In this document: piece by piece, positions 1 to 37,500 of the stretch
Numbering within the stretch: the stretch's first letter is position 1
Layout: every line of letters begins with the position of its first letter
Assembly: GCA_021613535.1 (NCBI GenBank)
Contig: CP075494.1
Coordinates: 16,058,001 to 16,122,000, forward strand
Reading direction: 5' to 3'
Origin: Adineta vaga
Lineage: Eukaryota; Animalia; Rotifera
Length of the DNA stretch: 64,000 nt
The notes under the pieces: model-generated
The model's input: the letters and a program-made list of their open reading frames with translations, nothing else
Database searches by the model: none
What the model was told of the DNA's origin: nothing
Position numbers and translations under genes: made by a program

Positions 1-1094
1 AAAGAAGAAAATAGTATTGTTTAAGGTTTTGAATTACAAACATCAGCAAGAAAATCATAGTTTCAAGCTAGAAGTGAATGTTACATCGTGTTTTGTAAAG
101 AAGTGTTTGCTCTACAGAGTAACCAATTCTGACAATTGTTGATAGTTTTACAAAAGAATTCGTGAAAAATAGCGAAACTCTCGGTCTTTGCTATTCAAAT
201 CAGTTTTTTCGGACTTTTCAAATATCGTCTCATGTCTGTAGAGATCTTTAAAAAGAGCACTAAGTTCTGATAATAATTTATCGTTTTTAACTCATTTGAT
301 ACGTCTTTGAACAGGATCATCAATCTGTGCAAACTAATTTTGTTAAGTTTATCAACGACTTCTTCATTATTCTGAGTACAAGCAGATACAAATTTTTGAA
401 GTTTATAGTAGAAAAAAGTAAAGAACACAAAATTCTGAGTCTAGCTAAGTATTTTTGGTTGATACTAATTCTTTTTAAGGCATCGGAAACCGAGTGAACC
501 TTTTGTCTCAAGACTTTTACAATCAGAGATTAAAACAGCGTGCAAGACAAATGCATCCAAAGGCGTGGTCCTGCATAATTCTACTGAAGCAAAGAAATCA
601 AAAACGTCACATATGTAACGTAAATCAAAATAAATTAAGCCTTTTATAATAACACTACGAAATGGATATAGAACAATAAGAGTGAATTGTCTTATAGCTC
701 TCTAGGGTGGGTATGGGCACTTCGATTGACATCCAAAATTGGCAAGAATTTTTGTAGAGTTTTCACGCGTTTTTGTCAGTTCTTGTCTGATCGGGTAAGC
801 ACAGTTTATTGTTCTCCATAACAAATTACTATGGTGGTACTTCGTTTTTTTTCAATAAATTCTAAGTCAGATATTCTGTCTTTTCCAGCAAAATGCCGAA
901 CAAATTACCATTTGAAATTTCAGCGTATCATCGGCACTTTGCTTAACAGACTGGTACGTGCTATCATGACATAGACTATAGAAAAACGAATCATTATTGA
1001 TCTTGTTGACGACATCGGTCAAATGAGATAAATAAACATATAAATAAATGCGTTGATTCATATTTTTGAATAAGAAACGAAGAAAAGAAGAAAG

Positions 1095-2860
1095 ATGAAA
1101 TTGAATGATTTACCTGACGAAGTTCTTCTATTAATCTTGAAAGAATTAAATAGTTTTGAAGTTTTTTATTCTTTTCATGATATTAATCAACGATTCAATA
1201 GAATTCTTTCTGATCCAATATTTACAAATTATTTGAATTTTGTCAAATGGTCATGTCATAAAATGATTACTAAGTTTTCTTCTAATCTTATTCATGAATT
1301 TTCTTCACAAATTTTATCTAAAATTTGTACAAGAATTGAATGGTTTAATGTTGAATCATCATTTATAAGACATATTTTATCTACGAACAAATATTCCAAT
1401 TTATATGGACTTGGTCTATACAATATTGACGAAGAAATAATCAATTTTCTTTTTACTGGTATGATAATACTTTATTTTAAAGATAATTCTTTCAAATCAT
1501 TTGATTTGTTTTATTTAGATAAGAATCTTTCATCTGATATTTTTCAAAATCAAATAACATCACTTGTTATTGGAATTGATTTAGAAAAAAAAGAATATGT
1601 CAATCGTAGAAAATATACTCTATTCACAATGATGAAGAATTTAATTCATTTAACATCTTATGAGGCATCATATGACGATTTCGTTCGATTTAAATTTGAT
1701 GTTTCATCTCGAAAATTTTCTTCGTCAACTTTATTGACATTAAATATTAAGGCATATACTTTTAATAACTGTCTCTGTATTCTTGATGGTCGTTTTATTA
1801 ATCTTCAATCACTTGAAGTTGATCTGATTAGCATTGGTCGTTCATTCGAACAAGTCGAAAATCAAGTTAGTTTAATAATGACGAGAAATATCTTTGTTCT
1901 TTTTTCTTTAACATTTTCTAGAGAGAAATTCCAAATCTGAAATGTTTCAATATATCATGTTTATCACAATTCTGCGAATACAACGAATTACTTGTTCCAC
2001 TACTTCGTCGAATGTCAAATTTAGAAAAACTTGGTTCATACATCACGGCTTCATTCAAAGAAAGATTTATTGATGGAACAAGTTTGAAAGAAGATATTCT
2101 CTATCATTTAACAAAAGTAAGATATTTCCATTTTGATATTTATTCAATGGTATCTAGAAATAATCAGATGAATTTTTCATCAAAAGAAGACGTTCAACAG
2201 ACATTTACAGATTTTCTGTGTACAAAAGTGATATCTTATGTTGATGATTTTCCTGATAGACCACAAACAGTACAATATCATGTTTATTCATATCCATTTC
2301 TAATGAAATCTTATAAAAAGATAACAACTAATTTTCCTGGTGGATATTATCCATATGTTCGCATAGTTTCATTACGTGATGATGAACATCCATTTGAACA
2401 TGAATTTTTTCGTCAAATTTCTGTTGCATTTCCAGTGATGAGTAAATTAACTGTGAATAATTATTGTGCACAAAATTCTAAACAATTGATGGATATTAAT
2501 TACAATCATTTTAAAGTTATTCGATATAATCATCTTATTGAACTTTATATTAAAGATTGTCATGATGATTATACTGAACAATTTGTTCTTAATACAAAAA
2601 CATATTTACATAATTCGATTTCACTATATATTGATTTGCGATCATTTGTAAGAATAATAGAGAAGTTTACAAGAAATGAAATACGAATGAATTGTGCGAA
2701 AGTAAATGAAATATTTATCTTTGGAGAAAACAAATTTAATTTGATTCAATCTTTACAAAATTATTTTCCCTTTGCAAAAGTTCATTCAATGTTATTGGTT
2801 TTATGTATAGTTTCGAAAAATAAAATGATCATTTGGAAGAAAATGAACTTCATTCACTAA
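1095..2860 (+). CDS. F-box domain protein (expanded bdelloid-type family), 3 exons
   Basis: N-terminal F-box LNDLPDEVLLLILKEL and family motifs CILDGRF and HPFEHEFF. GT-AG introns 1459-1518 and 1866-1921 join the 1095 and 2012 ORFs in frame. Confidence 0.85.
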
Positions 2861-3597
2861 AACATATTTAGTTTGTGCAATGCAATGAAATCTTAATCTA
2901 ATCATCGAAGTTTTTACAAAATCCACAAGAATTTGTGGAAAATTTCTAGAAAAGAATGATATTTTGAAAACTTGTAATAATATCACATAAAATAATGTTT
3001 TGGTGAATGAATAAGTATTTCAAAGAATTGAGTTATTTGAATAATCGATATAACATAACGATGTGCTTTATTTATTATGTAGTCCTACACCAGTGCAACT
3101 TTTTGCACTCGAAACCGAACAATCTATTTATTTTAAGCTCGGACCCATGCCGAACCGAACCGGATCGGCACTAGTAACATATTTTCAAAAATATCACCAA
3201 GTTTGTGAACGCTAATATCATGCATAAAACCATAACGGGTGATTTCACTCATAAACAAGAAGGAAAAACATTAGTGAGTAGTGTCACATATCTTCTGGAT
3301 CGGGGACGACGGAATATGCCATGAAAGATTCAAGATACGCGGGTTAAAAGGTCATCTGCCATATCCTGTCGGAGATGACACATATTCTCCATCTCCTATC
3401 CTCAAGAGATGAGTGAGGATAAAAACAAGACACCCTCACCCGCCCTCAAGATGCTTATTCATAGTCAAGTTTGATTACAGAAAAGAAAACATCATTGTTC
3501 TCACTGATGATTACGGTCATACAGATGCCGTAAATATCTATATAAATAATCATGTATCATTTATATTATAAATGAATCTAATAGATAAAAAATAATT

Positions 3598-5367
3598 ATG
3601 ATTGGTTCATTCGTTCTATTAGATACTTTACCAGATGAAGTTCTTATAATTATTTTGAAAAAACTAAATAATGATCAAGTGTTATATTCATTGATGGGTG
3701 TTAACAAGCGATTCAATGCATTTGTACGTGATTCAATTTTCACAAGTCATTTGACATTGATGAAAAAATCCACCAATAAATTTATCTCACCATTACCTGA
3801 GTTGATACTTTGCCAATTTTACTCACAAATTTTACCTGAAATTTATCATAAAATTCAATCGCTAAACGTCGAATCATCTTCTATGGAACAAATTCTCTCT
3901 GTATATTATCCAAATCTACATCGACTCGGTTTATATAACATTAATAGTGAAACTCTAATTGAATTATTGTCCAGTAAGATATCTTATTTTTATCATTGAT
4001 TTTCATTTTTTATAAGAAATGAAATAATTCATTCAAAGAATATGTGCAGATATTTGATTTGTTTTTGAAAAATGTTTCTTTTTATATTTAGATCAAAACA
4101 TTTTCAATGATAGATTGAAAAATCAAATTCGATCGTTTACTGTTTGTATGACATATGACTGCAAAAAAACTTCACAAAAGCAGAATATAGAGATATTTGC
4201 AAATCTTTTCACTATTTTCACCAATCTACAATATTTAAATTTTGGTTCACCAGAAATCTATCCTCAATTTATATCGTTTGAGATTTTATTGCCAATATTT
4301 AATTCATCTATGGTCTTAGAGTTACATGTCAACATACACAGATTTGACGACTGTCTTTATTTACTTGATGGACGTTTTAATCAACTTCGGACGCTTTATG
4401 TCAATATTCTTTTGATTAGTTATTCTTCAAATTCGAAAAGCAAGAATATGGTAAAATGCATTTCATGAATATCGAATTAATTCAAATGAAATTTCTTTGT
4501 TTTCAGGGAGATTTGCCTAATTTGAAATGTTTTTCATTACATTCTCGCGAAGAGACAAACGTATACGATGAATTACTTGTTCCATTATTCCAACGTATGT
4601 TCAATTTAGAAAAACTAGATTTAGATTTAGTCGTTCGTTGTAAGAACACATTTATTGATGGTAAGAATTTAAGAACAAATATTATCAATACAATGTTATT
4701 ATTAAATCATTTTACATTTCATATTTGTTCAATTGTTTTTCTTACTAATCTGATCAATTTATTATCGAATGAAGATATTCAACAAACATTCATTGATTTT
4801 CCACAGAAACAAATTATGTCGTATGCTGATTATTTCCCCGAAATTAAAGAAGGTCAATGTCATGTTTATTCATATCCATATCAATGGAATGAATATTGTA
4901 GAATAACAAATCATTTTCCTGGTCATATATTAAAATACGTTCGTAAATTATCGCTTTTTGATGAAAAACCTTTTGAACATGAATTTTTTATTCAAATTTC
5001 AAACTCATTTCCATTCATCGAAAAATTAACCGTAAGTAATCAAAAACCACAAATCAATAAACCATGCAAACAATTAACTGATAGAAATGAACATTCACCA
5101 GTTACAAAATACTTATATCTCACGGAACTTAAGCTCATTGAAGTTCATGATGATTATATTGAAGAATTTATTGTCGATTCGAAAACTGAATTACCAAATA
5201 ATCTATGTTTCATTGTTGAATATGGAGGAATGAAACGTGTGACAGGACGTTTTACAAATATTAGGATGCGAAATACATGTAAAAAACTGCACAGTATTGG
5301 CCTTATGGGAACATATCGAATCCCAAAATATGTAAAAGAATATTTTTCACATACGAAAATATTTTAA
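3598..5367 (+). CDS. F-box domain protein, tandem paralog of 1095-2860, 3 exons
   Basis: LDTLPDEVLIIILKKL, CLYLLDGRFNQLRTL, KPFEHEFF. Introns 3974-4091 and 4451-4506 join three ORFs in frame, at equivalent positions to the paralog. Confidence 0.85.
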
Positions 5368-5570
5368 ATGTTATCAATACTTATGTTGAATGAAATAAAT
5401 CATAGTCTTGTTTTCAAGAAAGATTTTTCGAAAATATTATTCATAAATTAGAGAAATGAAGTTATGATTATAAATCAAAGAAAATATTTGTAATTGTTTT
5501 AAATTAGACTATCTCGTAGGTTATCTTCGTTGAAGAAATATCAAACAAGCCATGAATTTCAAACGTAGGT

Positions 5571-6244
5571 AAAGTTAGCACCATATTCGAGTATTTTTTG
5601 TTAGGATTCGCCTGTAAACTTGTGCTGGTCTTCGAAAAGGTTGTGTTGGATGCAGAATTTAACTATCTATCGAATGATGCTAGTTTTAATAGGGGTCACC
5701 GTCCAAAAACTGAAGTTTTTGACCAAAAACCGGTGTTTTCACCCATTTTTCGGACTTAAAACTTTTGTATTTCTTGCCCGGATTCGCTCGAGAACTTGTG
5801 CCCTGTCTAAGAACGGTTGTGTTGGATGCAGAATTTAATTCTCTATCAAATGATGTAGTTTTTGAAGACAGTCACTGAGAGAAAAAATCGTCACACCCAC
5901 CCACCCATACCCTGACCCACACTCAGACCCTTGCCGCCGACAATACCCCCTAAGACCTACATCATTTGATAGATAATTAAATTCTGCATCCAACACAACC
6001 GTTCTTAGACAGGGCACAAGTTCTCGAGCGAATCCGGGCAAGAAATACAAAAGTTTTAAGTCCGAAAAATGGGTGAAAACACCGGTTTTTGGTCAAAAAC
6101 TTCAGTTTTTGGACGGTGACCCCTATTAAAACTAGCATCATTCGATAGATAGTTAAATTCTGCATCCAACACAACCTTTTCGAAGACCAGCACAAGTTTA
6201 CAGGCGAATCCTAACAAAAAATACTCGAATATGGTGCTAACTTT
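5571..6244. mobile_element. Foldback/MITE-like element with ~288-bp near-perfect inverted arms
   Basis: 5571-5858 is the reverse complement of 5957-6244 (one mismatch seen), with a ~98-bp spacer. Each arm holds two copies of GGTTGTGTTGGATGCAGAATTTAA. No clear TSD. Confidence 0.85.
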
Positions 6245-6278
6245 TCTTACCTCTAGTCTACTATCAATAGTAAATGTC

Positions 6279-7532
6279 TTACGGAGTTGATACAACCTCA
6301 TAATTCGGCAGCACATTTTTCTGACCAGCCTTCGGAGTGAAAAGTTTTGTGACGAATCGAGTGATGGCAGGTCTGAATACAAACCTAAGTACACCGTTGC
6401 GCAAGGCAATTGCAGTGCGTGTGTTTGGTAAACCGACGCGTAGAATCCCAGGAATGATTTTCTGAGTTTTTGTCACATAAGGGCGCATCCATGCTTCATA
6501 CTGCTTAAATGCCTCATTATGATTCAGATGGCGTGACAGTTCACCGGCAAGAATGTAAGCGCCAACAAGAGCCACGTTTGCTCCCATGCCAGTGAGTGGA
6601 GAAGGAGAGTAACCTGCGTCGCCTACTAGAGCGACCCGTCCTTTTGACCATCGATCCATTTTGACCTGTCCAACAGTATTAAAATAGAAATCATCTGCGT
6701 TCGGTAGTTCACGAAGAATTCGGGGTGCTTCGAAACCAGCATCAGCAAATAACTTTTGTATAAGACGTTTTTGCATGTCGACATCCAGTTTTTCGTAACC
6801 GCGTTCTTTACTTCGAAAGCAGAGATACGCTTGTGTTTGGTCTTGGTTATCTGGACGTAGTGCTACTGATCGTCCTCCGGGTGCAGAACAAAAACGTACG
6901 CAATTACCATCAGAATCACTGCGAGGAATAGAAAAATATGCCGTGTAAAAGTTAGCATAAGAGATAGGCGATTCATCGCCGAAGACGAGACGTCGAGTCT
7001 TTGAGTGTATACCATCAGCACCTACGACTAAATCGAATTCGCGAAGATTGCCGCTAGCAAACTTGACTTGCACTTTATCACCACGATCGTCAATAGCTTG
7101 TGGAGAATCACCAAAAACATATTCAACGTCGTTACGAATGTACTCGTAGAGAATTTTGGCTAATTCTGCACGACGAATTTCAATCTCTTCAACAGAGCCT
7201 TTTTCACCAAAGTTATCTACATCAAGACTGGCTTGCAATCGTCCTGTGCTGTCGACAATGTGTATTCCTAGATCTCCAGTAATCTTCTCGCGAACTTTGC
7301 TTTCGATTCCCATACGCCAAGCAACTTCTTTTCCCTCATCTTGTAGATCGACCCAATGACCAGATAAACGTAGTTCTGGTGCACGCTCAACCACCACAGG
7401 TTTCATACCATAACGATGTAAAAAAAAGGCCAGAGCATGACCAGCAATTCCTCCGCCGACCACCAGAATATTGTAGTTTTTCTCTGGCCCTTTAAGGTTG
7501 GATAAGGATCGACGTAACAACGTAGAATGCAT
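6279..7532 (-). CDS. FAD-dependent monooxygenase (class A), bacterial-like, probable HGT
   Basis: GGGIAG Rossmann motif, VVGADGIHS (DG motif) and LVGDAGYSPSPLTGMG (GD motif). Uninterrupted 417-aa ORF, visibly more GC-rich than the flanks. Confidence 0.9.
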   Translation of the reverse strand: MHSTLLRRSLSNLKGPEKNYNILVVGGGIAGHALAFFLHRYGMKPVVVERAPELRLSGHWVDLQDEGKEVAWRMGIESKVREKITGDLGIHIVDSTGRLQASLDVDNFGEKGSVEEIEIRRAELAKILYEYIRNDVEYVFGDSPQAIDDRGDKVQVKFASGNLREFDLVVGADGIHSKTRRLVFGDESPISYANFYTAYFSIPRSDSDGNCVRFCSAPGGRSVALRPDNQDQTQAYLCFRSKERGYEKLDVDMQKRLIQKLFADAGFEAPRILRELPNADDFYFNTVGQVKMDRWSKGRVALVGDAGYSPSPLTGMGANVALVGAYILAGELSRHLNHNEAFKQYEAWMRPYVTKTQKIIPGILRVGLPNTRTAIALRNGVLRFVFRPAITRFVTKLFTPKAGQKNVLPNYEVVSTP

Positions 7533-8301
7533 TTTGCGCTGTTGATAAATCCTGGAAAAAATAATAGAAGAATCATATAGATAATCTCTCTGGTTGCCTC
7601 TTATTCGTGATACTCAAGAGCTACTTTAAATAGTCATGCAAAAAGTTATTGAAAAATGAGAAACATAAATACAAAAAAAGAGTTTCTGAAGAATATTGAA
7701 TCACCTACCGAAACGCGTAACAGAATGTTTTTAAACGAAAGAAAACGAGTTATCGAGTGAAAACGTTTTCATAGTCACATAACGAATGCACTCTCCATAC
7801 GTAACCGTACGCACTTCTTCTATTCTGTCAGTGTAAGACAGGATGAAAGAAATAAAAACATCGCTAGGCACTCGTATATTTGCGTTCTTTCACATATTTC
7901 TTTTGTATGAAATGTCGCTATGCCATGGCCTTCTTCCTCTCTGTAACTCTTTATGCTATTCTTCGTTCTGTAGCACGTGCACTGCATTGAAAAAAAAATG
8001 GTGTTTTGCCGAACCTAAAAGGTTTTCTATGAATCACCGGTTCAAATATTTACAGCAAAATTCGGACGACAATGGAGATCAAAGGAACCTCCAAAGGGAA
8101 AAATACCACCAGCTAATATCTTACGACAACGAAATGGTGTTGGACGACCAGCTGCAGATATACAAACTATAAAAGAAGCATTTCAGATTCTGATTACTCA
8201 AGAAATGATTCTTCTTTTGGTCAAAGAAACCAATTGACGAGCGCATCTGATCGCAAAAGAATGGAATAAGCAAAATCCGGGTAAAGAATATCAACGAAAG
8301 G

Positions 8302-8542
8302 TGTGAGATAGGTACTGTTTCGTCGGATGTTATTTAGCAGAAAATCTTATCATGTATGGAACAACGTTTATTAACGAAGAAATGAAAGATATATATATAT
8401 ATATAGGTTTGAACAGAACGAAAAGAACATATAAGAAGATTCCATATGACGTCATGGCAGAAGGGACAAATTCAGTAGTACATATGACATCATATATATG
8501 TGAATAAAGGATATCAGCTGTAGGTCGTTTTACTTCTTAACA
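8302..8542 (+). mobile_element. Solo LTR (241 bp)
   Basis: TGT...ACA termini, 4-bp TSD AAGG (8298-8301 / 8543-8546), internal TA-rich tract and AATAAA. Removal restores the piggyBac frame QRK-DTNVEEMW. Confidence 0.7.
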
Positions 8543-8583
8543 AAGGACACAAACGTTGAAGAAATGTGGGCCTTCATTAGACT

Positions 8584-28377: not shown

Positions 28378-30417
28378 TTATGATGCATTATGATATTGAA
28401 AAATTTTAGCAAATAAATCGTCAGTATTAATATTTTCCAGATTCAACTCTTTCGATGATGGATAAACAGTTTTTATTGCATGGCATTTGTTTAACATTTC
28501 AGAAGCTTCGTCAAATTTCTTCTGTTTCTTATAGATTTGAGCAATGTGCTTATATACGAGGGCGAGGTCATGAGGATTATACTCTGATTTGTTTTGTATC
28601 ATACCAAGACATGTATATAAGATATTCAAAGCTTTATCCAGTTCATTCAGCTCTTCATAAATGTTAGCCATATCATTGTACAATGAAATAGTGTCTGAAT
28701 GAGCTATTGGCAGATGTACGAGCATTAGTTCCAAAGCACGCTCGTAGTAATTCATTGCTTCATTATATTTGTTAAAACAATATTGTAGAATAGTTCCGAT
28801 ACTTTCGTACGAGTAAGCAATATTCGTGTAATCTGGTTGTGAAGCATTTATTTCAAGTTCAATAGATCTGTTGTAATTGTCAATTGCTTGTTGATCCTTA
28901 TTCACAGCACTACAACTTATTGCTACATTACTATAATAATAGGCGAGCAATGGATCATTTGTATCGACATGCTCCGCAATAATATTCAACGCTTTTTGAT
29001 GATACTCTAGTGCTAACTCTTGATTTTCTTTCTCACCATTGATCCAAGCAAGAGTATCATATAATGTTGCTTTCATTTCCCAGTCATTTTCCGATGCTAT
29101 ATGATTTTCACATAATTCAATGGCTTTCTTATGTTCATCCATTCTTACAAATAAACGACAGAGAGGTACTAGTGGGTTCGGACGTTGTAGTTGAATAATT
29201 TTATTCATATGAATCGTTAGTTTAGCTAAAGTTTCATCTTGATCATTAGTAAGTATTAAACCGACGTGCCAAACATTATCAATTAATTCAATATTTTGAA
29301 TTCGAAAAACAGTACCCATTGAAAATAGCCATTCATGTTCCGCTTCTCCAAAATTACTAAATTTTTCTATACAACCAAATGAATTATTAGTATAATCATT
29401 TAAATTAACATTGAATTTGAAAACAATAGCTACTGTTTCATGATCTGATTGTCCGGCAAATATAATTGCTACATCTTGACTTGTAGTCGTAGATACGAAA
29501 TTTGAAACTGACAGTAATCCACCTTCATTATTTTTCAACTTATCAAATTCTCTAAACGACAATTTTTGACCGCGATAAAGAGTTAATATTGATGCTGATT
29601 GAATATGATCATCTTTTGGACGAAGTTGAACAAGTTCTTGATGAAGATGACGAAGGAATGTACGCATATTGTATAATGTTTCGACATCGCGAGTGCGAAG
29701 AGCTTTGTTCATTAATTTATGGAGAAAACAATCTCTCGTATACCACCAAATCGCTCGACGTTTATCGTATTGACGTTCAAATTCATCGATGATTACTAGT
29801 TGAGGAGGATCTTTAGAATAAAGCTTTCGACAATATTCCACAAACTCTGTTGTACTATCATCTTCAAATCTTAAAAGAACTTCTTTCAATAATTGTGAAT
29901 ACATAAATGTACATTCTTGTTTGTTACAATATCTCGGTATTGAGAGAGAAATATCCGATACTTCTAAAACTTCGAATCCAATAGAGTCATGTTCGATTCG
30001 ATTCGTATCGAATTTAATTTGATTAATCAATCGATTGACATTCGTATAAACACCTTTGATCTTTCGAATGGATTTAGACCATTTTTTCTCCATATCTTCA
30101 TTTGATAAACATAAAATATATACATCAGAAATAGACAGAAGATCTTCAACAAGTGTAAAAATACATGAATCGATTATTGTGCCAGAGACGATTAACAGAA
30201 TATTTTCATTTTCCAAATCAGTTATATAATCGATACATTCATTAGAATCATTGAATATTTTAATATCATTACTAATTACTTTCAATTGTTCAATTATTTG
30301 TGTACTATGATTATTTGTATTAATTGCATTATTTAACCAAACAATAATAGAACTTTCAATGTATTGTCGTGTTTTGAGAATATTTACTTCTTTCATTTCC
30401 ATTCGTTTAGAAACCAT
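28378..30417 (-). CDS. ADP-ribosyltransferase (R-S-E class) + TPR repeat protein
   Basis: AIWWYTRD, LYRGQ, FVSTT and EAEHEWLF, followed by TPRs; intronless, 679 aa. Confidence 0.9.
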   Translation of the reverse strand: MVSKRMEMKEVNILKTRQYIESSIIVWLNNAINTNNHSTQIIEQLKVISNDIKIFNDSNECIDYITDLENENILLIVSGTIIDSCIFTLVEDLLSISDVYILCLSNEDMEKKWSKSIRKIKGVYTNVNRLINQIKFDTNRIEHDSIGFEVLEVSDISLSIPRYCNKQECTFMYSQLLKEVLLRFEDDSTTEFVEYCRKLYSKDPPQLVIIDEFERQYDKRRAIWWYTRDCFLHKLMNKALRTRDVETLYNMRTFLRHLHQELVQLRPKDDHIQSASILTLYRGQKLSFREFDKLKNNEGGLLSVSNFVSTTTSQDVAIIFAGQSDHETVAIVFKFNVNLNDYTNNSFGCIEKFSNFGEAEHEWLFSMGTVFRIQNIELIDNVWHVGLILTNDQDETLAKLTIHMNKIIQLQRPNPLVPLCRLFVRMDEHKKAIELCENHIASENDWEMKATLYDTLAWINGEKENQELALEYHQKALNIIAEHVDTNDPLLAYYYSNVAISCSAVNKDQQAIDNYNRSIELEINASQPDYTNIAYSYESIGTILQYCFNKYNEAMNYYERALELMLVHLPIAHSDTISLYNDMANIYEELNELDKALNILYTCLGMIQNKSEYNPHDLALVYKHIAQIYKKQKKFDEASEMLNKCHAIKTVYPSSKELNLENINTDDLFAKIFQYHNAS

Positions 30418-31672: not shown

Positions 31673-32251
31673 ATGAATACGAAATATTTCTATCAATTAT
31701 TAATAATAAATATCTTATATCTAACAACTATTTATGTAAAGAAATTGATTATTCTTATTGAAATTCTTCATTTATTTTCTTTTTAGGCACGTAGATCCGA
31801 TAAATGTAATTTGCCTCGTGGACGATCATGTACAAGTATGACACCCACAAATACAAAATTGGAAGGTTTAGGTGTTTATTATGAGGATCCATGTCATGGT
31901 GCTGGATGTGGATTTTTTCATTCAAATTGTCGTCTTTGTTGGATCGATCAAAATGCTCCTGGAAGAGCTGATCGTCTACAATGTCCACCATGCGTGGCTG
32001 AGCGTTTTCAAAGAGAAAAATCTGAAGATGCAGTATGTAGTTTACCTCGTGGACGATCATGTACAAGTATGACACCAGAAAATACAAAATTGGAAGGTTT
32101 AGGTGTTTATTATGAAAACCCATGTCATGGTGTTGGATGTGGATTTTTTCATTCAAATTGTCGTCTTTGTTGGATCGATCCAAATGCTCCTGGAAGAGCT
32201 GATCGTCTACAATGTCCACCATGTGTTTCAAAAATTTTAAATAAAAATTAA
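31673..32251 (+). CDS. Secreted protein with two tandem 63-aa Cys8 domains (~175 aa)
   Basis: Exon 1 (31673-31735) encodes signal-like MNTKYFYQLLIINILYLTTIY; intron 31736-31786; two repeats at 231-nt spacing. Confidence 0.8.
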
Positions 32252-32464
32252 CTTTACCTTTTCGTTTAGAATATCTTTACACGATTTCTATTTCTTTTTT
32301 TTCCATCTATATAACACGATTTTGATTCTCATAACCATGATCAGTCCAAAGTTCATCTTCAAATAAAATTAAGAAAACATTGAAGTTCGTTTTTAATCCT
32401 TTCTCTTCTCTAACAATTTCATGAGACCAAAAAACTAACAGATAAATACATTACATAAAAAATA

Positions 32465-33507
32465 TTAATCCTTTTCGTGATAAACTTTTGAAACACATGG
32501 TGGACATTGTGGACGATCCATTCTTCCCGGAGCCTTTGGATCAATCCAACAAAGACGACAATTTGGATGGAAAAATCCACATCCAATACCATAACATGGA
32601 TTCTCATAATAAACACCTAAACCTTCCAATTTTGTATTTGTGGGTGTCATACGTGTACATGATCGTCCACGAGGTTCTTCACATTGTGTATCATTACTAT
32701 TTGTTGATGTTGTTGTTGCTGATGTTGTTGTTATTATTGGAGGAGATTTTGATGTTAGTGAATAATTTTTGATTCCAATAAGAATTAATAACAAAAATGA
32801 AATAAATAAAATCGTTAATATACATAATCGAATAAAACATGAGGATTTGAAAGAAATATGACATGATGAATAATTATTATTAATACGATTTAATTTCAAA
32901 GAAGATGGATTTTCTTTTGTTTTTTCAATAAATGGTTTTATTAAATAATCTTCATTTGAAATATTTCTATTAAAATTATTATTTGTTAATATTTGTAAAG
33001 TATCTTAATAAAAGAATATATTCAATTCATTTTTGTTTCAAAATCAAAATTTCATATAAAATTACTTGAATTTTGATTAAAATTAACTTTATCTTCATCT
33101 TCTAAATCTTTCAAAATATTTTCTGAAAGACTCTTTGAATTATTTGTAAATGAAGATGAATTTCTTCTTGAAACTTTTTCTATTTTTCTTCGTTGAAGTT
33201 CTAAAACAACTCAAAATTCATATGATATTCGAAATCTAGAATATGAACCTTTTAAACTATTTGAAGCTTGATAACATTTAATTCTTTCAAATGATTGAAT
33301 TAAATAAGTAAAATTTTCTTCCGAAATCTTGTTTCGATCAAAAAGTTGTTGAATTAAATCCAAAGCTCCACCAATTGTTGGATCATCACATATACGACGA
33401 TCAATATCATCAACTAATAAAAATGAAAGTTTTTTACGTTCAATATCACTTAAACGATCCAATATATCAATTAAAACTTCACGAAATTGTAATTTATAAT
33501 TTTCCAT
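32465..33507 (-). CDS. Death-effector-domain + TM + Cys8 domain protein (~310 aa)
   Basis: Exons 33507-33249, 33200-33066 and 33003-32465 splice in frame. DED-like FREVLIDILDRLSDIERKKLSFL..LFDRNKISEENFTYL; TM LCILTILFISFLLLILIGI; T/S stalk; one Cys8 domain. Confidence 0.8.
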
Positions 33508-34504: not shown

Positions 34505-37500
34505 TTAATAATATAATTGTGCAAGATTTACAGCAGTACCATTAACATCATGTCCACCTGTTACTAAAATTCTTCCATCATTTAATAAACACGGTATGTA
34601 TCCAGTCGGCATGTTGCTTCTATCACCGATCAACGTCCAACTGTCTGTTGATGGATTATACAACTGCATTTTATAATAACCATCAACTATTAGAAGTTGT
34701 CCATTAGACAATACTGCTTCAACACGCCAAAATGTTCTATTAGCTAAGTTACTAAAAGATGTCCACATACCTGTTGATGGATCATATATTTCAGATTTAT
34801 TTAATAAACTACCAAAACCCCATTGATCAACGACTAATACTTTTCCATTCGATAAAACAGACGTCATATGTTCAATTCGTGCATTAATCATATTACCAGT
34901 TTGTGTCCATATTCCTGTCAATGGATCATATAATTCAGTACTATTCAAACTACCATTCACATTTTCTCCACCAGTGACTAATACTTTTCCATCATTTAAC
35001 AAAGTTGCTGCATGATTATGTCGTATATCAGTCATGTTACCAGTCAATGTCTAATTGTTAGTTATTGGATTATATAACTCAGCAGTATGTCTTTCTCCAC
35101 CACTTACTAATACTTTTCCACTATTTAGTAAAGTTACTGTACAATGATAACGTGTTTCAATCATATTACCAGTTTGTATCCATATTCCTGTTAATGGATC
35201 ATATAACTCAGCACCATTTCTGTCAGCGGCAATAACTAAAACTTTTCCATTAGTTAATACAGTTGCTGTATGTTGACTTCGTGAAATAGTCATATTTCCA
35301 GTTTGCGTCCAAATACCTGTTAATGGATCAAACAATTCAGCATTATTTAAAGTACTATAACTATTAATTCCACCAGTTACTAATACTTTTCCATTTAGAT
35401 AATACCGATGCTGTATGATACCATCGTGCATAATTCATACGTCCAGTATCAAACCATCCTAAAATTAACAGCATGTGAAGGAAATTTAGTTGATTATTAT
35501 AAAATTGTTATACCTATGTTCGGCAAAAACTTATTGCTATTAATGGTAAACATACAAATTGTGATGAACAACATGAGTTGATGATACATATCGATTGATT
35601 TGATGTACATGTATGAGTAATATTATCACATAGTTCTAAGAGTGAACATTCAATTCCAGGTGAACAATAACTTGTATTATTCATTGTACGACCCATGTGC
35701 TACGAACCGGATAAAAACCGGCGGTAAACCGATCGTAGGACTGAGGAGTATACCGCCTAAAAACCGGCGGTTTACCGCAGTTTTTGCCGGTTTCTCGCGG
35801 TTAACCATCGGTTTTTTCTCTTAAATTTCTCATTTGTACTGCTTTCTTATTGAGAACTTTTTACGCATATTATTATTCCATTATATTTTATTTTTAATTT
35901 TCATCATCACAGAAGAGAAACTACACATGTCTAGAAACAAATTTCGTAAAAAAATACACAGAAAATAGGTTTATCACAATTCACAAATTATACACAACAA
36001 CAAAGTGACACGTTTTCGCATTTGTACAATTCATTTCAGTTTAGAAAACATCAGATGTAATATGAACAACAGAAAACTGATGAAATCAAATAAAAACACT
36101 CACGCATTAATCGCATGACTTATAACAACAGGTTTTTTGTCTTTCTTCCAATTTCTTCGTTTGTTTAATATAGCTTCATGAATATTTGGCCATTCGATTG
36201 CTAATTTTGCTGTTGTAAGTCAAAACTTGACTCTCACTGCTTCTAAATAAAAATAAGAGGAAAATATCTACCTATGTAAAATATTATTTGAAATTGTTTT
36301 AAACTTTCTATTCAGACACTTTTCTAAAAGAATAGCCCGTATCATATATGACAAGTTGATACATTAAATTTACTAAAAACTTCAAAATATCTGGTCAGTT
36401 TCTCCGACGTGTTATTCTTTTCTCTATTATGTTGAAGAATAATTCCAACGTACCTTTAATGAAAAAATAACTTCGGTGTGAGAGAAGTTTATTTTTCTTT
36501 GTCACAGGATCAAGTTCAAGTAATTCATCTTCAGAAAATAGTTTATCGACTAATTTCAATGCAAATAAGTTTTTTTTCGTCGGATCACCATGAATACGTA
36601 AAGCATCAAAAGTTGTTTCACCACCATCAGTTGAATACGGCTAAATTATAGAAAATGTCTGATGATTCAAGAAACAAGAAAAACTACCTTATCAACTCAG
36701 AAGGATATAAATTTCCATCATCATCTGTTCGAACACCTTCCAAAGGATTAATTTCTTCTTCAATATCAACATAAATCTACAATTAACAGATACATAGCGA
36801 GAAATATTATTGTGCTTATAAACACTTACTTTATTTTTCATAGTCACGTAAATCATCATCAGTTGAAGCATGTGGAAAATTTTAATCTACAGTTGGAAGA
36901 TTTAGTTCATTCGTATCACCATCAGAATCTTCAGGTGCTGATGAAAGTACATCAGAGAGACGAACAGCTTATTTTCGTTTTTCACAACGACGGTCTCGCT
37001 GTGAAAGTACTTTGCTAGAATAAAACTTCTGAGAGGCCATTACTAAAATAAAGCAAATAATAAAACAACAATTTTAGAAGTTTCTATTTACATGTATACA
37101 GAATAATTGTGACAATCGTTCAAACGTATGAGCTGATCGAATAGAATAAAGAATCTAGTAATCAAAATAATTACTGAAAACACATGTTCGATCAAAAAAT
37201 TAGACACTTACAATTTTCGAATAAATAATTTCAACATGAAAATAACAACATCAACGATAATGAAAGATGAATTATAACTGAACAAGTACAATACATCTCA
37301 ACTGAACTCGATTGTAGGCACAGCCAGAATTGCAAATGAATACTAACGACCGGCAAAACCGTTAGAAAATATCGTCCACCAATCAGAACTTTTAGAGCGC
37401 CATCTATAAAAATTTATTTAGTCATTTAAATGACCGTATACTACTAAAAAAAAGTTTGTGTTTTTTAAATAATTTTTTGTACGATACTCATTAGAATGAT

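Follow-up and report, generated by a model that had tools for sequence, protein, structure and literature searches.

Death-fold signalling is usually described as a relay from a receptor to an adaptor and then to a protein with a death effector domain (DED). FADD, caspase-8 and c-FLIP are soluble adaptors or enzymes, and the death receptors of the TNFR superfamily are type I membrane proteins with TNFR cysteine-rich repeats and a death domain, which reach the DED proteins through FADD. Dectin-1 (CLEC7A) is a mammalian type II receptor for beta-1,3-glucan that has a stalk, a C-type lectin domain and a hemITAM tail and clusters on particulate glucan. The GH81 enzyme of Bacillus halodurans carries the carbohydrate-binding modules CBM6 and CBM56, and such modules have beta-sandwich folds.

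Here we describe two convergent genes in a 64,000-nt window of a chromosome of the bdelloid rotifer Adineta vaga. One gene encodes a putative receptor with a DED, a transmembrane (TM) helix and a C-terminal domain of eight cysteines (Cys8), and the other encodes a secreted protein with two copies of Cys8. The DED of the receptor scores with Pfam PF01335 as do those of FADD, caspase-8 and c-FLIP, and it aligns with caspase-8 DED1, Phe-Leu patch included, but it is tethered to the membrane, lacks the RxDL motif and has no attached caspase or death domain. Like Fas, TNFR1 and DR4/5, the receptor spans the membrane and joins a Cys-rich ectodomain to a death-fold domain in the cytosol; it differs from them in its predicted type II topology, in carrying the DED on the receptor itself and in an ectodomain that gives neither a TNFR_c6 match nor a PDB fold match. 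It is leaderless, with the DED at the N-terminus and the Cys-rich domain at the C-terminus, which is not a type I arrangement. The secreted neighbour recalls the TNFR decoy receptors as a soluble relative of an ectodomain, a likeness of logic only. With Dectin-1, the receptor as proposed here would share a single-pass type II topology, a stalk, a C-terminal putative glycan-binding domain and a signal triggered by clustering, but Cys8 has no sequence or fold relation to the C-type lectin domain. Like the modules appended to GH81 enzymes, Cys8 can follow the catalytic domain on its C-terminal side, separated from it by a low-complexity linker and at times present in several copies, but it is a 64-aa disulfide-rich domain that belongs to no Pfam family.

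Receptor gene, topology and death effector domain

The three exons of the receptor gene (Table 1) join in frame into one protein, as the initial annotation had proposed, and their parts add up to 310 aa (86 + 1 split codon + 44 + 1 split codon + 178). Splicing is required in A. vaga because in-frame stops are present in both introns, and both have GT..AG ends. Searches with the receptor were carried out exon by exon or using the orthologue proteins. In alignments, the three exons were collinear with the full-length proteins predicted for A. ricciae, A. steineri, Rotaria magnacalcarata and R. socialis, and the acidic motif of exon 2 aligned with the orthologues as well. Particularly, in both A. 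ricciae orthologues the DED, the TM helix and Cys8 lie in one uninterrupted open frame (308/309 codons) with the intron left in, and the architecture is therefore independent of the predicted splicing. The A. ricciae intron is at the same position as intron 1 of the receptor gene, after the residues SLK, and intron 2 has no A. ricciae counterpart. The proposed order also held: the DED is followed by a single TM helix, a stalk rich in Thr and Ser and, at the C-terminus, the eight-cysteine domain, which is 64 aa long here. We are highly confident that these parts form a single protein.

Table 1 Features of the receptor gene and its convergent neighbour (positions in the window)
Feature	Position	Strand	Description
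Neighbour exon 1	31673..31735	+	Hydrophobic leader, read as signal peptide, 21 aa
Neighbour intron	31736..31786	+	51 nt, GT..AG
Neighbour exon 2	31787..32251	+	Cys8 copies 31805-31996 and 32036-32227, stop codon
Inverted repeat, neighbour Cys8 copy 2 and receptor Cys8	32027..32692	.	Arms 32027-32237 and 32482-32692; 211 nt, 88% complementary
Spacer between convergent genes, stop to stop	32252..32464	.	213 bp
Receptor exon 3	32465..33003	-	Rest of linker, TM helix, Thr/Ser stalk, Cys8, stop codon
Receptor Cys8	32492..32683	-	64 aa, 8 Cys; from alignments and AlphaFold2 model
Thr/Ser-rich stalk, membrane to Cys8	32684..32770	-	From exon 3 translation
Single TM helix	32771..32839	-	23 residues, mean Kyte-Doolittle 2.9
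Receptor intron 2	33004..33065	-	62 nt, GT..AG, in-frame stop
Receptor exon 2	33066..33200	-	Cytoplasmic linker with conserved acidic motif LKDLEDED
Receptor intron 1	33201..33248	-	48 nt, GT..AG, in-frame stop
Receptor exon 1	33249..33507	-	Start codon and DED; 86 aa and first base of split codon

The first 35 residues of the receptor orthologues contain no hydrophobic leader, in agreement with the earlier reading of the receptor as a protein without a signal peptide. When the flanks of the TM helix were compared, the N-side was clearly richer in K+R than the C-side in 6 of the 11 sequences examined, and the charge bias was neutral in the A. vaga and A. ricciae receptors. We infer a type II topology, which places the DED in the cytosol and Cys8 on the outer side of the membrane. 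This orientation is supported by Cys8 itself, in which eight Cys are invariant or near-invariant and which stands behind a leader in the proteins P0001, P0002 and P0003; the Cys-rich domain of the receptor has to be folded within the secretory pathway.

The death-effector-like N-terminus was confirmed with Pfam. Exon 1 matched PF01335 with an E value of 4.6e-10 and 40.0 bits, above the curated cut-off of 35.9, over profile positions 1-69 of 82, and the same DED scored 38.7 bits in a six-frame search of the genome. A weak phmmer alignment was obtained with caspase-8 DED1, and it shows that helix 2 keeps its Phe-Leu patch (S-F-L-L aligned with K-F-L-S-L). Exon 1 and its A. ricciae orthologue share 73% identity, and the dN/dS of the DED between the two species is about 0.3, in the range of purifying selection. 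The RxDL motif, with the charge triad of helix 6, is missing, and K-C-Y-Q is found there in A. vaga and all orthologues. In the same genome, R-x-D-L/I is kept by the soluble DEDs of the tandem-DED helicase genes (C5:14.94 Mb) and of one DED-only locus (C2:2.30 Mb). With RxDL replaced by K-C-Y-Q in the receptor and by C-x-D-A throughout the DED-TM family described below, the canonical DED contacts may therefore be lost. A DED within 10 kb upstream of a same-strand caspase domain was found nowhere in the genome except at one locus, and this candidate DED-caspase partner was rejected, as a TPR exon and a separate start codon lie in between. The receptor may signal through its DED, a possibility that we regard as slightly on the doubtful side.

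A modular family of DED-TM genes

The receptor gene is one member of a modular bdelloid DED-TM family with at least about 23 genes. A TM-like open segment follows the DED in 23 of 30 loci, compared with a background of 7.3% and with 0 of 30 in the antisense control, and the outer exons of the family encode an NHL propeller, jacalin, DM9 or Cys8. For the paralogues, splicing among the exons was inferred from their order and spacing. The receptor follows the plan of the family, in which exons for a family-type DED, a TM segment and an outer domain succeed one another on one strand, and its DED is 43-51% identical to most of the paralogous DEDs. Compared with the NHL, jacalin-like and DM9 paralogues, the receptor thus has the same gene plan, a similar DED and the family's C-x-D/Q-A in place of RxDL, and its own features are the Cys8 outer domain and the pairing with a secreted two-copy paralogue. 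Across the family, the helix 2 patch reads H-F-F/Y-L. In paralogous receptors, the lectin folds jacalin and DM9 stand where the present receptor has Cys8. In two family members, TPR repeats stand behind the TM segment, which is odd for an ectodomain and cautions against reading all members alike.

The initial annotation had regarded the receptor and its neighbour as a candidate undescribed module. This view stands in part: the literature searched describes neither a DED-TM receptor nor the Cys8 domain, and Cys8 is uncatalogued, but the receptor is not a singleton, and UniProt already lists its orthologues, automatically named 'DED domain-containing protein'.

The Cys8 domain and its secreted copies

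Using a 61-sequence alignment, AlphaFold2 gave a Cys8 model with a pLDDT of 91.7, consisting of one short helix and two strands; a model from a 12-sequence alignment (pLDDT 42) was discarded. The ectodomain had been called unrecognised, and it proved so in every search. No Pfam family covered Cys8 in any of the 24 scanned proteins or pieces that carry it, and the profile matched nothing among PDB sequences except a chance zinc finger at E 0.58. In fold searches with the model, Foldseek against the PDB gave nothing usable (best E 7.8), VIA-align against 48,161 chains gave no Z >= 2, and the ESM Atlas gave TM <= 0.42. A feature-based search of a protein atlas gave no usable match. The PDB sequence and fold searches found no characterised or solved relative of Cys8. 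A TNFR-like identity, prompted by an oomycete match named 'TNFR-Cys domain-containing', was rejected because there was neither a match to Pfam TNFR_c6 (E up to 10) nor a fold match.

Six copies of Cys8 are present in the A. vaga genome, and the named matches of the profile come from bdelloids and stramenopiles only. The closest non-rotifer architecture is GH81 with Cys8. In A. vaga itself, a GH81 gene (PF03639, 1.4e-67; PF17652) continues through a Ser/Thr/Pro/Gly linker into a C-terminal Cys8, the metagenomic protein P0014 has GH81 followed by four Cys8 copies, and the top score of the broad Cys8 profile belongs to the GH81-linked copy. Cys8 is also joined to an M12B protease in P0055 and occurs in P0061, which is named hyaluronan-binding by its source. 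Related repeats form long tandem arrays in the oomycetes Phytophthora, Globisporangium and Albugo, where one protein is named 'mucin-like' by its source; they are the most distant matches, and the first or last Cys pair is often absent. Between A. vaga and A. ricciae, the dN/dS of Cys8 is 0.2-0.4, the same range as that of the DED. As a discrete unit appended to the catalytic domain of a glycoside hydrolase, Cys8 occupies what would be the position expected of a carbohydrate-binding module. Attachment to GH81, or to the M12B protease of P0055, demonstrates modularity rather than sugar binding, and for the mucin-like oomycete proteins with related repeats a structural or adhesive role could equally apply. 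On the evidence of its partners, we consider that Cys8 probably binds a glycan. The strongest single candidate for the ligand is beta-1,3-glucan, since Cys8 stands behind a linker in GH81 endo-beta-1,3-glucanases, although as a specific assignment it is unlikely to be right.

The convergent neighbour had been predicted about 210 bp away, with a signal peptide and two Cys8 copies, and both points were confirmed: the stop codons are 213 bp apart, and the leader and both copies are found in the annotated 175-aa A. vaga product (NCBI protein I4U23_027126, P0001). The DNA of the receptor and neighbour Cys8 had also been described as nearly identical, which overstated the similarity (88-89%). DNA identity is 88.5% between the receptor domain and either neighbour copy, and 93.8% between the neighbour copies, which form a direct repeat of 192 nt (94%). 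From 64 codons, dS between receptor and neighbour Cys8 in A. vaga is 0.18, compared with 0.47-0.57 between receptor orthologues. The low dS between paralogues suggests that the two genes have been homogenised by gene conversion. A tree of rotifer Cys8 copies gave no resolution inside the receptor/neighbour clade.

Synteny of the pair was recovered in A. ricciae (twice) and on one metagenome contig, and failed in Rotaria socialis, where the 10 kb on either side of the receptor gene contain no secreted gene. In R. socialis, both genes have LTR-retroelement genes at their flanks, so an insertion between them is possible. The metagenome copy of the receptor had been divided into two genes by a prokaryote-style gene caller. 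A possible second A. vaga pair at C4:603 kb was rejected, as the secreted two-copy paralogue there has no adjoining DED gene.

Proposed mechanism, rival readings and significance

We propose that the pair encodes a DED-TM-Cys8 receptor clustered by glycan, together with a soluble bivalent partner, and we give this reading as a whole a probability of about 0.5. Cys8 would be a small disulfide-bonded glycan-binding module, which probably arrived in bdelloids with a GH81-type gene from a stramenopile-like donor and was later shuffled onto the DED-TM chassis. Clustering of the receptor on a polyvalent ligand, for example the wall of a fungus or an oomycete, would gather the cytosolic DEDs, which could signal by homotypic contacts with other DED proteins. 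The neighbour would be a soluble bivalent form of the same specificity that either agglutinates or coats the target or competes with the receptor, and gene conversion across the inverted repeat may keep its binding domain similar to that of the receptor. The pair resembles a putative undescribed sugar-sensing immune module because Cys8 elsewhere trails enzymes that cut beta-glucan. In its most specific form, a glycan module acquired horizontally with a GH81 laminarinase and set on a death-fold chassis would act as an adaptor-free sensor of the beta-glucan walls of fungi or oomycetes with a conversion-matched soluble partner; such a sensor would need no adaptor because the DED is carried on the sensor itself. 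A recognition domain of foreign origin would then feed directly into the death-fold signalling of an animal. This specific form is speculative and, we think, improbable in full.

Three other readings share some of the same evidence. The protein could serve surface adhesion or the matrix instead of sensing, with Cys8 as a structural or adhesive domain anchored by the membrane form, the neighbour as secreted matrix and the DED as no more than a cytosolic oligomerisation or anchoring piece. The tandem oomycete repeats, one of them in the 'mucin-like' protein, would fit such a role, as would the presence of Cys8 beside a protease in P0055 and in the hyaluronan-binding-named P0061. However, those repeats are the most distant matches and often short of a Cys pair, the nearest architecture outside rotifers is GH81 plus Cys8, and lectin folds stand at the place of Cys8 in the paralogous receptors. 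Nor is any DED known to act as a cytoskeletal anchor, and on balance we consider an adhesion or matrix role unlikely. Alternatively, the divergent DED could be regulatory or dominant-negative and start no signal of its own, holding other DED proteins, such as the DED-bearing RIG-I-like helicases, at the membrane or blocking them in the manner of FLIP or PEA-15, while the ectodomain sets merely the place or time of this effect. The replacement of RxDL by K-C-Y-Q, the occurrence of RxDL-type DEDs on soluble proteins of the same genome (the tandem-DED helicases and the DED-only locus) and a genome with no evident DED-caspase speak for such a role. Yet the substitution is common to the whole expanded family, a pattern that a family-specific interface explains better than decay does, and the domain has been kept under purifying selection (dN/dS about 0.3) with its helix 2 Phe-Leu patch. 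We therefore judge a blocking role quite improbable.

It could also be argued that the joined protein does not exist, and that the DED exon and the TM-Cys8 exon of A. vaga belong to separate transcripts. Word searches of the A. vaga protein set gave the neighbour but no full-length DED-TM-Cys8 entry, and the prokaryote-style caller made two genes of the metagenome copy. Against such an artefact stand the continuous frame over all three parts in both A. ricciae copies, the full-length models in four species, and the conservation of the exon 2 motif and of the intron 1 position. In addition, the introns have canonical ends and typical lengths, the frame is unbroken, and upstream of the TM helix exon 3 lacks an ATG start, only a TTG being listed there. 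Separate transcripts are accordingly very hard to credit.

In conclusion, a clustered glycan receptor with a soluble partner is our preferred reading of the pair. Here the membrane protein carries the DED directly, and the family to which it belongs has exchangeable lectin-like outer domains. Cys8 can be regarded with confidence as a new small disulfide-rich domain, and it is a candidate new carbohydrate-binding module that stramenopiles also have. The binding domains of the receptor and its soluble partner appear to evolve in concert, and thus the question of whether the partner is a decoy or an opsonin can be tested with one recombinant protein. The receptor also offers a concrete test case for the possible co-option of a horizontally acquired module into animal immune signalling. 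Bdelloids reproduce asexually and face strong pressure from fungi and oomycetes, so the DED-TM family would be an undescribed, lineage-specific repertoire of innate immune receptors.

Gene model and topology of the receptor gene

The three exons of the minus-strand receptor gene, which the initial annotation had joined into one frame of about 310 aa, indeed form a single gene model: both introns (48 and 62 nt in the window sequence) are bounded by GT..AG, and exons 1 to 3 stay in frame across two split codons. The window spans C5:16058001-16122000 in a six-contig assembly of 100.8 Mb. Because both introns contain in-frame stops, the A. vaga receptor protein exists only when both are spliced. 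Using single exons or orthologue proteins as queries, full-length proteins with a matching order of parts were found by word-index search in A. ricciae (289 aa), A. steineri (320 and 297 aa), Rotaria magnacalcarata (344 aa) and R. socialis (317 aa), and all of them have a Pfam death effector domain (DED). The A. vaga exons are collinear with the orthologues of these four species, and the acidic motif of exon 2 is conserved. In addition, A. ricciae contig CAJNOJ010000823 carries two copies of the receptor gene, and in each copy the frame from the start codon of the DED to the stop after the eight-Cys domain (Cys8) is uninterrupted over 308 or 309 codons with a 57-nt intron retained, and thus the DED-transmembrane (TM)-Cys8 architecture is independent of splice prediction. 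The first of these copies is fused by automatic annotation to an upstream transposase-like gene (974 aa, DUF4371, weak DED). Comparison of A. vaga with A. ricciae gave a dN/dS of about 0.3 in the DED and of 0.2-0.4 in Cys8, so both domains are under constraint. Taken across species, comparative support for the predicted gene model is strong.

Features of the receptor gene, its neighbour and related loci in A. vaga
Feature	Position	Strand	Remarks
Receptor exon 1	33507-33249	minus	259 nt, 86 residues
Receptor exon 2	33200-33066	minus	135 nt, 44 residues
Receptor exon 3	33003-32465	minus	178 residues
TM helix	32839-32771	minus	23 hydrophobic residues, exon 3
Thr/Ser stalk	after TM helix	minus	exon 3
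Cys8 domain of receptor	32683-32492	minus	last part of exon 3, 64 residues, eight Cys; one copy
Neighbour exon 1	31673-31735	plus	within the gene for leader and two Cys8 copies
Neighbour exon 2	31787-32251	plus	after 51-nt GT..AG intron
Inverted repeat arms	32027-32237 and 32482-32692		211 nt, 88% complementarity, 244-nt spacer
Secreted paralogue (dispersed)	C4:603 kb		two Cys8 copies
Glucanase gene	C4:7.61 Mb		one Cys8 copy
DED-TM loci, examples from set L041-L059	L044:934-1902; L043:1224-1754		
DED-TM loci, examples from set L041-L059	L050:5768-6280; L048:4806-5348	minus	

The N-terminal domain had been described as death-effector-like, and exon 1 matched the Pfam DED (PF01335) with an E of 4.6e-10 and 40.0 bits, above the curated cut-off of 35.9, while its alignment to caspase-8 DED1 was weak. 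Exons 2 and 3 had no Pfam match up to an E of 10. The remaining layout, with no signal peptide, one TM helix, a T/S stalk and a C-terminal eight-Cys domain, agrees with the translations and with the orthologues, from which an N-terminal hydrophobic leader is absent. Secreted paralogues from three species carry a leader ahead of Cys8, and the eight Cys of the domain are fully or almost fully conserved in the alignments, so the domain folds in the secretory pathway. Lys and Arg are clearly commoner on the N-side than on the C-side of the TM helix in six of 11 sequences (for example, 6 vs 1), and the bias is neutral in A. vaga and A. ricciae. The best reading of these features is a type II topology, in which the DED would lie inside and Cys8 outside.

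The convergent neighbour gene

The product of the plus-strand neighbour gene, identical to NCBI protein I4U23_027126 of the bdelloid rotifer A. vaga, consists of a hydrophobic leader followed by two Cys8 copies, and 213 bp separate its stop codon from that of the receptor gene, in agreement with the tail-to-tail arrangement at about 210 bp noted initially. The copies had also been called nearly identical in DNA, which was overstated: the receptor Cys8 has 88.5% identity with either neighbour copy, and the two neighbour copies have 93.8% with each other. The other details of the initial description had been given correctly. The convergent Cys8 exons form an inverted repeat (see table). As a speculation, read-through transcription of one or the other gene would give an RNA with a long hairpin, and this could feed RNA silencing. 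In the flanks, the C-terminal half of a 679-aa minus-strand ORF (28378-30417) is TPR-repeat-like by eye, and two adjoining minus-strand ORFs (34505-35431) have Kelch-like repeats by eye.

In A. ricciae, the whole convergent pair is duplicated in tandem, with the copies about 7.3 kb apart (stretch L037, CAJNOJ010000823.1, 737-2256 and 8001-9531), and a soil metagenome also holds the pair, on a contig of 2.5 kb in which the DED exon was made a separate gene by a prokaryote-style gene caller. In R. socialis, a search up to 10 kb from the receptor gene gave no secreted gene. On the R. socialis contigs L064, L066 and L069, LTR-retroelement genes (RVP_2, RVT_1, rve) directly adjoin both the gene for the receptor and that for the secreted two-copy protein. 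The orientations on these separate contigs are compatible with the insertion of one element, which may have split a pair that was once convergent.

Within A. vaga, dS between the receptor and neighbour Cys8 is 0.18, and that between the receptor Cys8 of A. vaga and A. ricciae is 0.47-0.57 (64 codons each). Because the paralogue dS is low though both genes are present in both species, gene conversion across the inverted repeat is indicated; this comparison, over 64 codons and with a weaker signal in A. ricciae, points to conversion as the process that would keep the two genes alike in Cys8. The tree of rotifer Cys8 copies was unresolved inside the receptor/neighbour clade.

The Cys8 domain

Single-sequence and broad-profile searches alike gave six Cys8 copies in the A. 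vaga genome. With a 61-sequence alignment, AlphaFold2 modelled the domain at pLDDT 91.7 and pTM 0.78, with one short helix and two strands; a 12-sequence alignment gave pLDDT 42. Foldseek against the PDB gave no match for the model (best E 7.8), none of 48,161 chains reached a Z of 2 in VIA-align, and TM was never above 0.42 in the ESM Atlas. The Cys8 profile likewise matched no PDB sequence, and when Cys8-carrying proteins were scanned against Pfam, no family covered the domain, so the initial description of the ectodomain as unrecognised stands for these databases of families and folds.

At C4:7.61 Mb, the Cys8 copy forms the C-terminal end of a GH81 endo-beta-1,3-glucanase gene (PF03639 E 1.4e-67, plus PF17652), which has an N-terminal hydrophobic leader and a Ser/Thr/Pro/Gly-rich linker before Cys8 (5892-8560 of stretch L039, C4:7604000-7613200). 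GH81 is unusual in animals, and the gene was therefore likely acquired horizontally. When a 12-copy rotifer profile was searched against 1.84 billion representative proteins, 54 matches were obtained, among which the named non-rotifer ones were stramenopiles only (raphidophytes, brown algae and oomycetes) and no other animal was named. The metagenomic protein P0014 has GH81 followed by four Cys8 copies, and P0055, also metagenomic, has an M12B reprolysin-type protease domain followed by one. A Cys8-like module was also seen in the metagenomic protein P0061, named in its source as cell migration-inducing and hyaluronan-binding protein. With the modules of P0055 and P0061, Cys8 is not restricted to glucanases. 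We read Cys8 as an uncatalogued extracellular disulfide-rich module; behind glucanases it stands where a carbohydrate-binding module is classically found, which provides a lead to Cys8 as a candidate module of this kind.

The DED-TM family and its proposed working

Pfam DED matches were found at 33 places in the A. vaga genome, and in 23 of 30 DED loci examined an open segment with a TM-like stretch (at least 90 aa, starting no more than 500 nt downstream in the sense direction) follows. For comparison, 3000 random window positions gave 7.3% positives in this test, and 30 antisense controls gave none. The outer exons that come next encode an NHL propeller, a jacalin-like lectin domain or DM9 repeats, and at one locus a mannanase-type galactose-binding-like domain 1 kb further on is a candidate part of the same gene. 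The window DED has 43-51% identity with most paralogous DEDs. By exon order and spacing, from which splicing of the paralogues is predicted, the receptor gene belongs to a modular DED-TM receptor-like family with at least about 23 members. At L046:1064-1312 (C3:4534800-4542300), the DED and TM exons precede a short Cys-rich open segment that has no Pfam match and by eye looks like a small defensin-like peptide. DED loci lacking the TM segment differ in kind, comprising one DED-only locus and a helicase cluster at C5:14.94 Mb (L061, C5:14942800-14952799, sense 763-6746), in which two adjacent genes have tandem DEDs or a single DED before ResIII/DEAD helicase exons. By architecture, these helicases are RIG-I-like, with DEDs where CARDs are expected, and their DEDs keep an RxDL-type motif.

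Beyond the architecture, family membership, convergent pairing and modular use of Cys8 demonstrated here, a working model can be proposed. Cys8 would bind a glycan, and its linkage to GH81 makes beta-1,3-glucan the best single guess. A particulate ligand would cluster the receptor, and the clustered DEDs would signal through homotypic contacts with other DED proteins. The neighbour product may be a soluble bivalent form with the specificity of the receptor, and might serve as an agglutinin, an opsonin or a competitor. A TNFR-type death receptor was rejected, as neither TNFR repeats nor a death domain are present and the predicted topology is the opposite one. It is closest in logic to type II lectin receptors such as Dectin-1, in which the tail is ITAM-like; here, a death-fold domain replaces that tail.

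Several features count against the canonical DED mechanism. By Pfam score the receptor domain is a member of the DED family, yet it fails the RxDL feature: the position reads KCYQ in the window DED and C-x-D-A in the DED-TM family, whereas soluble DEDs of A. vaga keep RxDL. Comparison of DED and caspase coordinates gave no DED in front of a caspase domain in the A. vaga genome. Two DED loci carry TPR repeats after the TM-like segment, and since such members are at odds with an ectodomain reading, they too would argue against the canonical mechanism. The long TPR_12 arrays at L062 (C3:3841500-3849500) and L055:1041-1622 fit an extracellular reading poorly, and immediately downstream at L062 there is a caspase-like (Peptidase_C14) gene that has a separate start codon. 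The initial observation was confirmed and its interpretation supported in part, in particular for the DED-TM-Cys8 architecture and the uncatalogued outer domain; DED signalling and the role of the neighbour product are predictions.

A previous rotifer lectin survey left out all proteins with TM segments and screened known lectin Pfam families alone, and by this design it was blind to both the DED-TM family and Cys8 (PMC8878817). Literature searches on rotifer or bdelloid DEDs, on DED with transmembrane and NHL, and on GH81 with cysteine-rich domains gave no description, and UniProt entries of the orthologues have only the automatic name 'DED domain-containing protein'. The product of the receptor gene is death-fold receptor-like, and both its architecture and its outer domain are new; its function is predicted from sequence.
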